A stretch of 64,000 nt of DNA from Bugula neritina (lineage: Eukaryota > Animalia > Bryozoa): the NCBI GenBank assembly GCA_964035545.1, contig OZ037765.1, positions 33,975,504 to 34,039,503 on the forward strand, given 5' to 3'. The position numbers were made by a program, and so were the translations under genes. Position 1 is the stretch's first letter. Each line of letters starts with the position of its first letter. The notes below the pieces were generated by a model. That model saw nothing but the letters and a program-made list of their open reading frames with translations, had not been told where the DNA came from and made no database searches. Shown here in pieces: positions 746 through 36,600 of this stretch.

Positions 746-889
746 CTGTTTGGTAAAGTTGACAGTTTACAGTTCTCCATGCTCAACTCTCTCAATGATA
801 GTAAGGATGTGAATATATTGTCAGGTAGACCTTCAGATAGGTTATTATCTGATATATTCAATACCTCAAGATTCTTCAGTGAAGATATG
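746..889 (-). CDS. LRR cassette exon B6 (144 nt, phase 2-2)
   Basis: ttacag|c ISSLKNLEVLNISDNNLSEGLPDNIFTSLLSLRELSMENCKLSTLPN ag|gtgtgt. Confidence 0.85.
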
Positions 890-3800
890 CTGTAACATAA
901 CATACAGGTTATAATAAAAACAAAACAAAACAAAACATGAAAACTGCAATATGCATATACAGCCTGTGTTTCTTGAATGTTTCTATGAAGGTATTAGAAA
1001 CCACACCCTTATCTAGCCATGTTACAGAAAGAACTTTGACTAATATAAAACAAGTCACTCTGTCTACCAGAAGAAGAGATATATAATTCACAATGGTTTG
1101 TGAATATCATTATAAAAACTGAGTGCCCATATAGCAAATTATTTCACAATTTGTAGCCTCAGCATACAAAGCTGGAGTAGTGACTGAATTTTAGAAAGTT
1201 AACATGACTCTGTAATTCTGGCATCTAACCTTTAGACAACCTTGGGTATAACAGTAGTATAGGTAGTTGTGGTATGACAATGTGGGTTAGATTAGAGGGA
1301 AGATAACTCTAATATACAGAAGTAGTTTCTTATATAGTCTAAACACTAGCAAGTCATAGACTGAGAACTAAACAGACAGGAAGATCAGTCAGTAAGAACA
1401 ACTGAGTTACCAATAAGATAGTATATATATATACTACTACGGTAAATTGATTATGGGATATTATATATTTAGTTACCAATAAGATAGCATGTATGCTAAT
1501 ATGATAAAGTAATTATGCATAATTAATTTATCATAGTATAGCATATATATCATATGGGATATTATACATATATTTATCCTGGAAATATTCTACACTATAA
1601 TATAATACACACCTGTTTGGTAGAGTTGACAGTTTACAGTCCCTCATGTTCAACTTTCTCAATGATAGTAAGGATGTGAATATATTGTCAGGTAGATCTT
1701 CATATAGGTTATTCTCTAATATATTCAACACCTCAAGATTCTCCAGTGAAGATATGCTGTAACATAACATACAGGTATAGAAACACTCTGTAGCTCATAC
1801 ATACAAAGTGTGATAACAGAGTTTTAGAATAATATTATGACTCTGTATTTCTACCATCTAACTTGGAGACAAACTTGGGCATAGCAATTATATAATGAGT
1901 AACAATGAGGGCAGAACTACTATAATGAAGAAGTAGAAAGCTCATTTTATATATAACCTAGGAACTAGTAAATCATAGACTGAGAATAAACGCATTCAGG
2001 TAGCAGTAACTGAAAGAATAATTAGTAAAAGTCTGAATGAGTTTTGTTACAGTTTGGTTTGAGCTGCAGAGTCCCTATAGCAGGGGTGGGCAACTGGGCC
2101 CCCTAGGGCTGCACTTGTGGCCTTTGCCCATTTTTCAGTGGCCCTTTTAATGCTTAAGATAAGTAAAAACTGTCATTGTTATTCTGATCAGCACAGCATA
2201 GGTTTGGTGACAAATTACTTTATTATAATAAAGTTTATTATGTGTACAATCATGTGGCCCTTCATTTCGGCTGACCTCTGAACTTGGCCTTGAGCAAAAG
2301 AAAAGGCCGACCCCTGCCTATGACATGACAGTAGTATGAAAGACAGTGTAGGTTAGCTTAGAGAAAAGATAACTCTAATAAACATAGAAAGTAGTTTACT
2401 ATATTATATCCTAAATACTAGCAAACTGTAGCCTGAGCACTGAATAAGTTGAAAGGCCATTTAGCTCATGTTTTATTATAATTTTGAATAGTCTTGACTC
2501 TAGAGCAATGATAGACCATAATCCTCAACTTGAGTGTAACTGTAGAATCCTTTGCTATGTATGCAGACAGTTGCTGAGTTACTGATGAGATATTATATAT
2601 ACTACAGTATCATTCTATACTATAATATAATACACACCTGTTTGGTAGAGTTGACAGTTCACATTTCCTCATGTCCAACTCTCTCAATGATAGTAAGGAT
2701 GTGAATATATTGTCAGGTAGAGCTTCAGATAGGTTATTCACTGATATATCCAATATCTCAAGATTCTTCAGTGAAGATATGCTGTAACATAACATACAGG
2801 TATAGAAACACTCTGTAGCTCATACATACAAAGTGTGATAACAGAGTATTAGAATATTATTATGACTCTGTATTTCTACCATCTAACCTCTAGACAACCT
2901 TGGACATAGCAGTTGTATTATGATGAGTAACAATTAAGGAAAAGCTATTATAATGAAAGAGTAGAAAAATCTCTTAAACCCAAACCCCAAACTCAATAAC
3001 CCTTATTTTTCATAATATGCAATTTGTTACTTACTTTACCATTTGTGCCATTATTACCTGTGCCATTATTACCTGTGCCATTATTACCTTTGCCATTATT
3101 ACCTGTGCCATTGTTACCGGTGCCATTATTACCTGTGCCATTTTTACCAGGCACTGCATGTATACACTATATTAACATACTCATATAGTTTGAATTCCTT
3201 GCTGAATATTGCTATGGGGTTGTTAAAGACCACACTTTTATGTAGCCATTGCAAAACAAGAACTTCGCTTAGTGAAAATAACTAGAAACAAGTCACTTTG
3301 TCTACCAGAAGAAGAGATATATAATTCCATCACAGTAATAACTTATATCAGTTACAGAACAGTATATCAACACCAGATGTTGCAGGTTTGGAGAAATAAC
3401 TTCCAGATGTTATGAGCTGCCAAACTCTTACTACTTCCTTCAAGATTGCAAATAATATTATAAAAACTGAGTGCCCATATAGCAAATTATTATTTCACAA
3501 TCTGTAGCCTCAGCATACAAAGCTGGAGTAGTGACTGAATTTTAGAAAGTTAACATGACTCTGTAATTCTGGCATCTAACCTTTAGACAACCTTGGGTAC
3601 AACAGTAGTACAGGTAGTTGTGGTATGACAATGTGGGTTAGATTAGAGGGAAGATAACTCTAATATACAGAAGTAGTTTCTTATATAGTCTAAACACTAG
3701 CAAGTCATAGACTGAGAACTAAACAGACAGGAAGATCAGTCAGTAAGAACAACTGAGTTACCAATAAGATAGTATATATATGATGCTACGGTAAATTGAT

Positions 3801-33600: not shown

Positions 33601-36600
33601 ATAGTCTAGACTCTAGAGTAATAGCAGACAATGATCTTCAAGCTGAGTGTAGAAATGTAGCGAGTACATTAGAATACAACAACTACTTATTGGTAAAACT
33701 CTGAATAAGTTCAAGTCTCAACAGACCATCTTCACTTGAGTGTTAACTGTAGAAACCTTTGCTATGTATGCAGACAGTTGCTGAGTTACTGATGAGATAT
33801 TATATATATTACAGTATCATTCTACACTATAATATATTACACACCTGTTTGGTAGAGTTGGCAGTTTACAGTTCTCCATGTCCAACTCTCTCAATGATAG
33901 TAAGGATGTGAATATATTGTCAGGTAGACCTTCAAATAGGTTATTCTGTGACATATTCAATACCTCAAGATTCTCCAGTGAAGATATGCTGTAACATAAC
34001 ATACAGATATAGAAACACTCTGTAGCTCATACATACAAAGTGTGATAACAGAGTTTTAGAATATTATTATGACTCTGTATTTCTACCATCTAACCTCTAG
34101 ACAACCTTGGACATAGCAGTTGTATAATGAGTAACTATGAGGGGATAACTACTATGATGAAGAAGTAGAAAGCTCACTTTATATATAACCTAGGAACTAG
34201 TAAATCATAGACTGAGAATAAACGTAGTCAGGTAGCAGTGACTGAAAGAGTAATTAGTAAAAGTTTGAATGAGTTTTGTTACAGTTTGGTTTGAGCTGCA
34301 GAGTTCCTATGGCAGGAGCGGGCAACTGGGCCTACCAAGGCCCACTTGTGGCCCTTTGCCCATTTTTCAGTGGCCCTTTTAATGCTTAAGATAATTAAAA
34401 ACTGTCATTTTTTTGGATTAGCACAGCATAGGTTTGGTGACAAATTACTTTATTAGCCTATAATAAAGTTTATTATGTGTACAATCATGTGGCCCTTCAC
34501 TTTGGCTGACCTCTGAACTTGGCTCTTGAGCGAAAAGAGTTAGTGTTTTATTATAACTTTGAATAGTCTTGACTCTAGAGTCTAGAGCAATGATAGACCA
34601 TGATCCTCAAATCTATTGTTAACTGTAGAAACCTTTGCTCTGTATGCAGACAGTTGCTGAGTTACTGATGAGATATTATATTTATTACATAGTATGAATA
34701 GTCACTAAATACTAGCTAGCAGTATGAATAGTTACTAAATACTAGCTAGCAGTATGAATAGTTACTAAATACTAGCTAGCAGTATGAATAGTCACTAAAT
34801 ACTAGCTAACAGTATGAATAGTCACTAAATACTAGCTAGCAGTATGAATAGTCACTAAATACTAGCTAGCAGTATGAATAGTCACTAAATACTAGCTAGC
34901 AGTATGAATAGTCACTAAATACTAGCTAGCAGTATGAATAGTCACTAAATACTAGCTAGCAGTATGAATAGTCACTAAATACTAGCTAGCAGTATGAATA
35001 GTCACTAAATACTAGCTAGCAGTATGAATAGTCACTAAATACTAGCTAGCAGTATGAATAGTCACTAAATACTAGCTAGCAGTATGAATAGTCACTAAAT
35101 ACTAGCTAGCAGTATGAATAGTCACTAAATACTAGCTAGCAGTATGAATAGTCACTAAATACTAGCTAGCAGTATGAATAGCCACTAAATACTAGCTAAC
35201 AGTATGAATAGTCACTAAATACTAGCTAGCAGTATGAATAGTCACTAAATACTAGCTAGCAGTATGAATAGTCACTAAATACTAGCTAGCAGTATGAATA
35301 GTTACTAAATACTAGCTAGCAGTATGAATAGACACTAAATACTAGCTAGCAGTATGAATAGTCACTAAATACTAGCTAGCAGTATGAATAGTCACTAAAT
35401 ACTAGCTAGTAGTATGAATAGTCACTAAATACTAGCTAGCAGTATGAATAGTCACTAAATACTAGCTAGTAGTATGAATAGTCACTAAATACTAGTTAGC
35501 AGTATGAATAGTCACTAAATACTAGCTAGTAGTATGAATAGTCACTAAATACTAGCTAGCAGTATGAATAGTCACTAAATACTAGCTAACAGTATGACTA
35601 GTCACTAAATACTAGCTAGCAGTATGAATAGTCACTAAATACTAGCTAGCAGTATGAATAGTCACTAAATACTAGCTAGTAGTATGAATAGTCACTAAAT
35701 ACTAGCTAGCAGTATGAATAGTCACTAAATACTAGCTAGCAGTATGACTAGTCACTAAATACTAGCTAACAGTATGAATAGTCACTAAATACTAGCTAGC
35801 AGTATGAATAGTTACTAAATACTAGCTAGTAGTATGAATAGTCACTAAATACTAGTTAGCAGTATGAATAGTCACTAAATACTAGTTAGCAGTATGAATA
35901 GTCACTAAATACTAGCTAACAGTATGACTAGTCACTAAATACTAGCTAGCAGTATGAATAGTCGCTAAATACTAGCTAGCAGTATGAATAGTCCCTAAAT
36001 GGTCCTGTGATACTCAATAATATGACTACAATGTAATACTACCATAACAATATAGTACCTGGTCCAGTTAGCATTACTGTCTACTCCAGATACATTCAGA
36101 TGTGTGAGATGAGGAAACACTGTGTTGATATTTGGAGGAATGTCATGCTTCAGTATAACATGAGTAACTGTATGATGTCTACTTTTATCATCGATAGTGT
36201 ACAGTGTAGTAGCTTTCGACACCCAATCATGATCAGCTCCATCTATACTGGATGTGTTGAACCACACCTCATACTCCTCTACAAAATATGCACCACTTTA
36301 TAAATAATAACTTTGATATCAAATAACAGAGTGTCTCAACACTATAAACAGTATTTAATTAAATGTGGAGAGTTCACAACTCCAAACAACATATTAACTT
36401 CAGTTGTTATATCAAAGGAGCAGACTGATAATATAGTATATATGACTCAGTATAGTCTTCAAACACCTTCTAATATTCTCTATAATATATAATAGTGACT
36501 GGAAGTCACTTGTATCTCTAGACTCAGCACCAGCAAAGTATGTACAGAACACCTTGATTCTAGTATCTGTAATACTAGTGATACACTCTTCTATAGAAGT

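Follow-up and report, generated by a model that had tools for sequence, protein, structure and literature searches.

The stretch of DNA described here, hereafter the window, comprises 64,000 nucleotides of the Bugula neritina genome (assembly GCA_964035545.1, contig OZ037765.1) and harbors on its minus strand nine exons of 144 nt, each of which encodes two leucine-rich repeats (LRRs). They likely represent germline-encoded LRR modules of two neighboring genes that belong to a very large LRR/Roc-COR/caspase family of bryozoans, in which the predicted concave face of the LRR arm is under diversifying selection and for which a sensor-switch-effector mode of action is proposed.

Cassette exons and selection at the concave face

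An earlier note on this DNA, made from the letters alone, had proposed nine such exons, and all of them are found at the places on the minus strand to which it had assigned them. The acceptor ATGTTACAGC has exactly nine exact matches on the minus strand of the window, a total count reached by 0 of 100 shuffles, and every cassette consists of 144 nt followed by a donor of the form gtgtgta(t/a); read on the minus strand, acceptor and donor are atgttacag|C and AG|gtgtgt, respectively. Within each cassette the sole open frame starts at base 2, runs to base 142 and encodes both LRRs, the layout being one base, 47 whole codons and two bases. Since the split codon AG|C (Ser) is present at all cassette junctions, the cassettes are of phase 2-2. 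The shared splice sites, the symmetric phase and the two repeats per cassette, all claimed beforehand, are thus confirmed by nine acceptor matches with one open frame each. A tblastn search of the whole 64-kb window yielded no tenth or divergent cassette.

On protein level the cassette reads L7xxL10xI12xxN15xL17 and L32xxL35xM37xxC40xL42. This is the LxxLxLxxN/CxL core of typical/SDS22-like LRRs with a period of about 23-25 residues, and Pfam LRR_1 was assigned to the cassettes at 746-889 and 32177-32320 with 28.2 bits (cut-off 20.6) and 24.7 bits, respectively. The residues that had been listed for the two repeats (SD, LE, SV and so on in the first; ELSMEN, KLNMRD and so on in the second) were reproduced letter for letter, including gctatgttacag in the cassette that starts at 4105.

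The nine cassettes had been treated as one set; they are distributed over two genes about 26 kb apart and do not form one array. Gene B holds three cassettes, located at 33845..33988, 32723..32866 and, as the last one, 32177..32320, with NMSQN/RELDMEN, NISWN/RELYMEY and NIPEN/RELYMWN in their respective two repeats. Gene A has six cassettes in the window. The first of its nine lies at 6270..6413 and was identified by its acceptor, its open frame and tblastn; it is followed by 4988..5131, part of a duplicated 2.35-kb two-cassette unit, by 3962..4105 with the acceptor gctatgttacag, 2638..2781 and 1613..1756, all three of which enter the comparison of duplicated units described below, and by 746..889, whose flanks match those of gene B's last cassette. 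All of these are on the minus strand.

For the analysis of selection, 62 cassette matches were collected from the window and 30 fetched loci. Of these matches, 59 are intact, with 144 nt and a splice site at either end; the others are one fragment and a variant of 129 nt, still in frame, that was matched in two registers. The x sites were fixed from the LRR consensus before the variability was seen, namely x2, x3, x5, x7 and x8 (codons 8, 9, 11, 13, 14, 33, 34, 36, 38, 39), with or without x10 (codons 16, 41). The ratio of non-synonymous to synonymous substitution rates (dN/dS, omega) according to Nei-Gojobori (NG86) is 1.82 over all codons of the 59 cassettes and 3.14-3.52 at the x sites, the other codons having 0.77. 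Counting by parsimony on a tree gave 271.5 non-synonymous (N) to 43.5 synonymous (S) changes over all codons (omega 1.94, p = 6e-6) and 190 N to 8 S at the x sites, where a ratio of about 5:1 is expected under neutrality (omega 4.6, p = 1e-7; rest, omega 0.82). By maximum likelihood (ML) under GY94, omega is 3.15 for all codons, 18.0 for the x sites and 1.41 for the rest, with likelihood-ratio tests (LRTs) against omega = 1 resulting in p = 1e-13, 3e-17 and 0.10, respectively.

All three procedures thus bear out the expectation, put forward with the nine exons, that dN/dS exceeds 1 at the beta-strand x sites of the genome's cassettes. Replacements are not spread evenly over the exon but concentrated at these sites, and the framework is near 1 or below. 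Here, x-site residues are replaced several times faster than under neutrality, as in immune receptors. Eight codons (11, 14, 16, 34, 36, 38, 39 and 41) are each above the neutral expectation (Poisson p < 0.001), with 5-14 different residues per codon, among which D, E, N, Y, W, R, K, G and S are frequent.

The nine cassettes of the window alone display an omega of 2.68. Among them, amino-acid variation occurs at 10 of the 12 x codons vs 10 of the 35 others (Fisher p = 0.0013), with 26 extra residue states at x codons vs 13 elsewhere, which agrees with the original observation that changes concentrate in the x positions of LxxLxLxxN/C. The three cassettes of gene B differ per pair by 10.3 non-synonymous and 0 synonymous changes. 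A single-sequence model of a natural four-cassette arm from the bryozoan Watersipora, whose repeats reach a predicted local distance difference test (pLDDT) of ~65-93, puts the xLxLx strand core at cassette positions 9-13 and 33-37. The hypervariable residues would therefore take turns with the core leucines along the strand and lie on either side of the Asn/Cys position. The x positions of the LRR strand motif form the concave, ligand-binding face of LRR proteins. This selection pattern supports the proposal of a diversifying repertoire, recognition itself being what we infer from it.

A near-invariance of the adjacent introns had also been noted. Genome-wide, this is true of no more than about 30 nt on the upstream side of the cassettes and about 25 nt on the downstream side. 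Beyond these conserved edges, the introns can be grouped into families that do not align with one another and whose members, within the window, are 87-96% alike. The flanking introns were initially considered as a genome-wide neutral yardstick, which was dropped since they cannot be aligned beyond about 30 nt, and young duplicates were used instead. In the duplicated units of gene A the exons differ by 8.3%, 11.1% and 11.1%, their introns by 2.2%, 3.6% and 4.2% over the matching 1.1-2 kb (Fisher p = 9e-7, 3e-4 and 1e-3), so that here exons diverge faster than the introns beside them (8-11% vs 2-4%). For forty recent pairs from the whole genome, the difference amounts to 5.5% in the introns vs 8.1% in the exons. 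Exon divergence levels off at about 9% regardless of intron divergence (Spearman 0.05): a few hypervariable codons saturate almost at once and the framework stays fixed. Furthermore, the dS of the cassettes between genes A and B is 0.033, and that of the adjacent Roc-COR exons 0.366 at an omega of 0.34, which indicates that gene conversion or rapid cassette turnover is acting on the cassettes.

Gene architecture, transcription and family size

Comparison of the window with itself revealed that 6244-9958 is paralogous to 33819-37834, with the same 30-nt satellite in both. Gene B extends on the minus strand from 37566 to about 24200 and is wholly contained in the window. Gene A runs off the low end of the window; three of its nine cassettes, its Roc-COR exon and its caspase exons lie below window position 1, in fetched flanking DNA.

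The cassettes of gene B splice in phase into a large exon encoding three terminal LRRs, Roc and COR (28653..30699, minus strand), behind which the Peptidase_C14 exons are located. The acceptor ag of this large exon is at 30701-30700 (...tttaacag) and in cassette phase; its low end is the open-frame limit and not a mapped donor. Domain, structure-database and fold searches were made exon by exon, and natural Watersipora proteins stood in for a chain with several cassettes. Pfam LRR_4, LRR_8 and Roc were detected in the large exon above their cut-offs, Roc scoring 30.3 bits in gene B and 31.5 bits in gene A (cut-off 27), and the G1, G3 and G4 motifs of the gene B Roc domain are intact (GNTMAGKT, DMGGQ and THKD). 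Sequence matches in the PDB are the Roco protein of Chlorobium tepidum (CtRoco), collinear across its LRR-to-Roc junction (6hlu residues 374-568), and LRRK1. An AlphaFold2 model of the large exon reached a mean pLDDT of 86.9 (37 homologues), and Foldseek matched it to LRRK1 (E = 5e-24) and to the LRR-Roc-COR of CtRoco (1e-22), also to LRRK2 and the CtRoco Roc-COR (3dpu), and to the isolated CtRoco COR domain (3dpt; E = 6e-11, template modelling score, TM, 0.65). Many homologues carry PF16095. Based on the Pfam Roc match, the G motifs, the alignment with CtRoco and LRRK1 and the AlphaFold2/Foldseek matches, the cassette genes are established members of the ROCO family. Neither Pfam nor the fold search revealed a STAND domain (NACHT or NB-ARC); the switch is Roc-COR.

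The caspase p20 part of gene B is encoded by two exons at about 27656-27498 and 27292-27074 (27074..27656, minus strand), scoring 22.3 and 50.2 bits for Peptidase_C14 and containing the catalytic His in SHG (SHGTSG) and the Cys in QACSG (LQACSG). The best matches are caspase-3 and caspase-6, with caspase-3 p17 as the closest resemblance (E = 5e-10), and the p20 exons are also detected by tblastn with the Watersipora and Bugula proteins. A p10 exon with the motif YGTWF at 24696..24788 (minus strand) was located by tblastn with a Watersipora protein and gives no Pfam match by itself. A p20 with His-Gly and the QACxG Cys, plus a p10, places this part among the C14A caspases, its activity being predicted from sequence. 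The proposed coupling of the LRR cassettes to a caspase in an animal therefore holds at the level of gene structure, and the nearest named relatives are bryozoan.

Two observations concern these caspase exons. The intron between the p20 and p10 exons of gene B is occupied by a 14-nt satellite of 1.7 kb with 122 copies (24822-26528). Moreover, the caspase exons of genes A and B are only 39-45% identical while their Roc-COR exons share about 80%, which suggests that the effector module is exchanged between neighboring paralogues or diverges much faster.

Upstream of the cassettes, the putative first coding exon of gene B (37249..37566, minus strand, ATG at 37566) was identified by a scan for open reading frames (ORFs) and Tandem Repeats Finder, and its counterpart in gene A lies at 9396-9692 (minus strand). 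Both begin with MSDSEAQ and continue in Pro/Ser/Thr-rich tandem repeats, (SVTPPPAQ)n in gene B, with (STPS)n as a further type; type and number of repeats differ between the two genes. The exon preceding the cassettes is located at 36059..36278 in gene B (minus strand), where it ends in ...AACTGGACCAG|gt in phase 2 (...GGACCAG|gt at 36059) and its acceptor is inferred only, and at 8480..8782 in gene A (minus strand, open-frame limits), with 74% identity between the two. No Pfam family was found for these N-terminal exons.

The intron before the first cassette contains the 30-nt satellite, at 34691..36000 in gene B and at 7530-8455 in gene A; in the latter it is present a second time at 259-629, inside the array. 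The array of gene A is built from a 2.35-kb unit of two cassettes with their introns, repeated about 2.5 times at 93-96% identity. About 117 nt of the intron after its sixth cassette match the intron behind gene B's last cassette (601-745 matches 32048-32176, within the block 601-908 matching 32048-32339), and this stretch adjoins the second copy of the satellite, of the type that usually precedes a first cassette. The simplest reading of these homology blocks suggests that the array of gene A may be an in-frame fusion of two tandem gene copies at the satellite.

Evidence for transcription was taken from Logan contigs, of which only spliced forms were used, originating from three studies (runs X1, X3 and X4). 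The depth of exons over introns was dropped as proof of RNA, since exon words are multi-copy in DNA too. In run X3, a spliced joint connects the donor of gene B's first cassette at 33845 with the second cassette at 32866; on the plus strand, the ends of the intron read CT..AC. At 32323/32324, loose ends carry the 3' end of a cassette or of the 5' exon on the acceptor of cassette 3 (X1, X3 and X4); in these three runs the end of a pre-cassette exon, of gene B or of a paralogue, is joined to a cassette acceptor. At 30704, a loose end joins a cassette end to the large Roc-COR exon (X4). The cassettes are thus transcribed and spliced at the predicted sites in three studies. One contig of X1, in which 36 letters separate the ends of two cassettes, was probably produced by the assembler running through shared words. 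That the locus as such is an assembly artefact was ruled out, since in independent runs the exons are covered to >= 99%; the locus is also present at 95-99% or more in RNA runs that bear the label 'symbiont metagenome'.

The closest named proteins are EB796_002463 of Bugula neritina (caspase, Roc and COR) and the 'MFHAS1 homolog' proteins of Watersipora subatra (LRR, Roc and caspase), and paralogue-level matches of up to 83% identity come from metagenome contigs. Public annotation lists the homologues as 'MFHAS1 homolog' or 'caspase p20 domain-containing'. With one cassette as query, the 216-Mb genome contains at least 184 cassette candidates; the 40 that were scored are all full length at 93-100% identity, and almost all are located at 32.6-34.9 Mb of one contig (C1). 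The number of Roc-COR candidate loci is at least 164. All 65 scored ones have E <= 1e-288, 48 of the 65 are without stop, and the loci cluster on C1 (about 80-90% identical) and on a second contig, C6 (about 65%).

A Watersipora gene contains two 141-nt cassettes of phase 2-2 (acceptor ...tttacag|A, donor AG|gtgagt), one LRR-Roc-COR exon of 2.2 kb and several caspase exons, and other Watersipora proteins have four to six cassettes which vary at the same positions. Homologous cassettes, Roc-COR exon and caspase exons in this gene imply that the architecture is older than the split of the two bryozoans. As regards cassette length, a Bugula cassette at C1:34936454 is 129 nt long and has lost five codons in frame from its first LRR with both splice sites kept; length classes can arise via small in-frame deletions. 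No paper on a bryozoan or animal ROCO-caspase family was found in the literature searched, outside of which most subscription journals lie, so that this is not proof of absence.

The neighborhood of the two genes contains further elements. Between them, inverted repeats of 1181 bp with 99.9% identity (12102-13282 and 17262-16082) enclose minus-strand ORFs of 250, 288 and 476 aa, none with a Pfam match, of which the 476-aa ORF is DUF6589-like by language-model features (0.97). The segment 12102-17262 is probably a young DNA transposon. An ORF at 51471-52518 on the plus strand encodes a basic-leucine-zipper segment (NRVAAQAARDRKKAHMDELE...) resembling XBP1 and represents an unrelated neighbor gene. 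Long imperfect (CTA)n and (TAG)n tracts at 54478-55158 and 56215-56806 are inverted and about 1 kb apart, around a 20/42-nt tandem repeat at 55718-56050.

Proposed mode of action and rival explanations

Due to their 2-2 symmetry, any number of cassettes could be placed between the 5' exon and the Roc-COR exon with the frame kept. Arrays would expand and contract via tandem duplication of exon-plus-intron units and unequal recombination, and gene conversion or rapid turnover would hold the framework and the splice sites near-identical across genes, with diversifying selection replacing residues fast at about eight codons (11, 14, 16, 34, 36, 38, 39 and 41). The variable concave face of the protein may bind a variable intracellular ligand, be it the product of a pathogen, a self protein in modified form or a cue of allogeneic origin. 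Such binding would alter the nucleotide state of Roc or the COR-mediated dimerization, both of which are known for CtRoco and LRRK2. Such a change could bring together or release the C-terminal caspase domains, leading to proximity-induced activation and, further downstream, to proteolytic signaling or cell death. The role might be antimicrobial or antiviral immunity, symbiont policing or allorecognition.

The earlier note had called the cassettes interchangeable. In an evolutionary sense this stands, as they share their phase, are duplicated as exons, become joined by array fusion and have a homogenised framework; alternative use within an individual is not part of it. The diversity seen here is germline. 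It is doubtful that, in addition, cassettes are used combinatorially within an individual, by skipping or by cell-specific choice among at least 100 genes, or that the genes are polymorphic determinants of colony fusion and rejection.

Several points weigh against the reading as diversified receptors. The RNA evidence consists of short assembled contigs that are not assignable among paralogues and give no expression levels. The omega tests assume a tree, yet homoplasy and recombination among the cassettes are heavy, which inflates the LRTs, and homogenisation lowers the synonymous yardstick on which omega depends. Site pairs with all four gametes make up 53% of the informative pairs, some of them inside one codon, and exon and intron distances are uncorrelated; the share fits conversion, recurrent mutation or both, which the four-gamete and Mantel tests do not separate. 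Part of the exon excess over the introns may stem from short-tract conversion between cassettes and not from new mutation. On protein level, Pfam COR-A remains below its cut-off in gene B (18.3 bits vs 35.3), so that COR is assigned by its fold, and ligand binding, the GTPase switch, caspase activation and the role in immunity or allorecognition are predictions from sequence. Nevertheless, homogenisation and recombination leave the 4-5-fold excess over neutral replacement at predefined sites unexplained.

This excess also bears on the view that there is no adaptive diversification, the exons being held similar by concerted evolution and the changes at surface positions being just drift under relaxed constraint. 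Such a view is in line with the strongly homogenised framework (dS 0.03 vs 0.37 in the neighboring exon), with a framework omega near 1 and with pervasive recombination and homoplasy. But relaxed constraint predicts an omega of about 1, not of 3-18 at the x sites, nor 190:8 for N:S against a neutral ratio of about 5:1. Exon divergence in young duplicates is 3-4 times that of the accompanying introns, 59 of 62 cassette matches have retained an open frame together with their two splice sites, and Watersipora varies at the same positions. Drift of this kind is therefore considered very unlikely. Selection of another origin would act if the proteins were endogenous cell-death regulators, whose LRR arms bind co-evolving, diversified self partners, for instance in cyclic polypide degeneration. 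The caspase is of the effector (caspase-3) type, and bryozoans undergo recurrent programmed tissue regression, both of which would fit. No partner family of matching diversity is known. Mb-scale clusters comprising at least 164 loci, birth-and-death dynamics and a hypervariable concave face are the signature of conflict-driven receptors such as NLRs (nucleotide-binding LRR receptors), plant R genes, variable lymphocyte receptors (VLRs) and Ectocarpus ROCOs (PMC3341825), which makes a purely endogenous role improbable.

Other alternatives concern how the cassettes are deployed. Exon skipping as in Dscam or the Ectocarpus ROCOs could produce combinatorial isoforms, adding somatic transcript diversity to the germline diversity; the symmetric phase permits it, and alternative splicing of LRR exons has been reported for brown-algal ROCOs (PMC11378527). 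A joint from the 33988 donor to the 32320 acceptor in X1 skips the cassette at 32866, and loose ends join the end of the 5' exon to a 32320-type acceptor. One side of this joint is 21 nt of shared framework; the joint possibly derives from a paralogue and is not counted as evidence; in general the joint flanks are 21-26 nt of framework common to many paralogues, and the loose ends of the 5' exon are at least 1 nt off gene B. The consecutive joint 33988>32866 is present as well, and Logan contigs give no isoform proportions. Skipping is held to be unlikely, with some weight left to it. Only a marginal probability is given to a somatic assembly like that of VLRs, with the cassettes serving as donors from which an incomplete gene would be filled in by copying. 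The resemblance is confined to the LRR positions that are variable. The cassettes have canonical splice sites, sit in order and in frame within complete genes and are joined by RNA splicing, and nothing points to an incomplete germline gene, so that the anatomy contradicts this reading.

Relation to known LRR recognition systems

Animals are known to sense intracellular danger mainly via STAND-NTPase receptors (NLRs), to which caspases are brought by adaptor domains. In the lophotrochozoan studied here, a different one-chain design, composed of a variable LRR arm, a Roc-COR GTPase of the LRRK2 type and a caspase, has been amplified to at least 100 loci. Earlier descriptions of this design are limited to a domain order of multicellular bacteria and, with the caspase missing, to the exon-shuffled LRR-ROCOs of brown algae. 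If the proteins are receptors, they would represent an independent origin of a diversified innate repertoire as well as a natural system in which to study the coupling of ligand binding to an output enzyme by a Roc-COR switch, the module known from Parkinson's disease. They would also be candidates for the genetics of bryozoan immunity, allorecognition or symbiont control, Bugula being the host of the Endobugula symbiont. Should the combinatorial or allorecognition reading be true, a colonial lophotrochozoan would possess individual-specific LRR recognition wired to a caspase via Roc-COR, a third LRR solution beside NLRs/Toll-like receptors (TLRs) and VLRs. The exon architecture illustrates how symmetric exons, tandem duplication, conversion and site-specific positive selection jointly build putative variable binding surfaces.

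Among the known systems, the LRR-ROCO genes of brown algae (Ectocarpus) display LRR exon shuffling, 72-nt LRR exons and positive selection (Zambounis et al. 2012, PMC3341825; Teng et al. 2024, PMC11378527). They share with the bryozoan genes the N-terminal LRRs followed by Roc-COR, symmetric exons of equal length and variable number, clustering and expansion, and positive selection on the concave face. In contrast to the one LRR per 72-nt exon of the algae, a bryozoan exon of 144 nt (141 nt in Watersipora) encodes two, and the animal host, the C-terminal caspase fusion and a family several times larger are further differences. The likeness is most likely convergent.

In bacteria, conflict systems based on AP-GTPase (Roc)-COR combine fast-evolving N-terminal LRRs with C-terminal effectors including caspases (Kaur, Burroughs, Iyer, Aravind; PMC8195603, PMC7159879). 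These have the same order of LRR, Roc-COR and caspase-type effector within one chain and the same predicted sensor-switch-effector logic. The bryozoan genes, however, are eukaryotic and intron-rich, their caspase is of the animal C14A type, and their diversity arises via exon cassettes.

With MFHAS1/MASL1, LRRK1/2 and the C. tepidum Roco, the LRR-Roc-COR core is shared by sequence and fold, at about 12-16% identity over the fold alignment. Unlike these, the bryozoan proteins lack kinase, ankyrin or WD40 domains, use a caspase as effector and have an LRR arm that is hypervariable and variable in length. The NLR/inflammasome systems and the expanded NLRs of invertebrates are similar in having a cytosolic LRR sensor, an NTPase switch, a caspase output and large clustered families under diversifying selection. 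Their switch is a STAND ATPase (NACHT/NB-ARC) instead of a Roc-COR GTPase, and their caspase is recruited via CARD, PYD or DD adaptors instead of being fused.

The VLRs of lamprey and hagfish are hypervariable at the same LRR positions (x3, x5, x7, x8 and x10) and are likewise modular in their LRR cassettes. These receptors are secreted or GPI (glycosylphosphatidylinositol)-anchored and are assembled somatically from cassettes without splice sites. The bryozoan cassettes, on the contrary, are ordinary exons of complete genes of cytosolic type.

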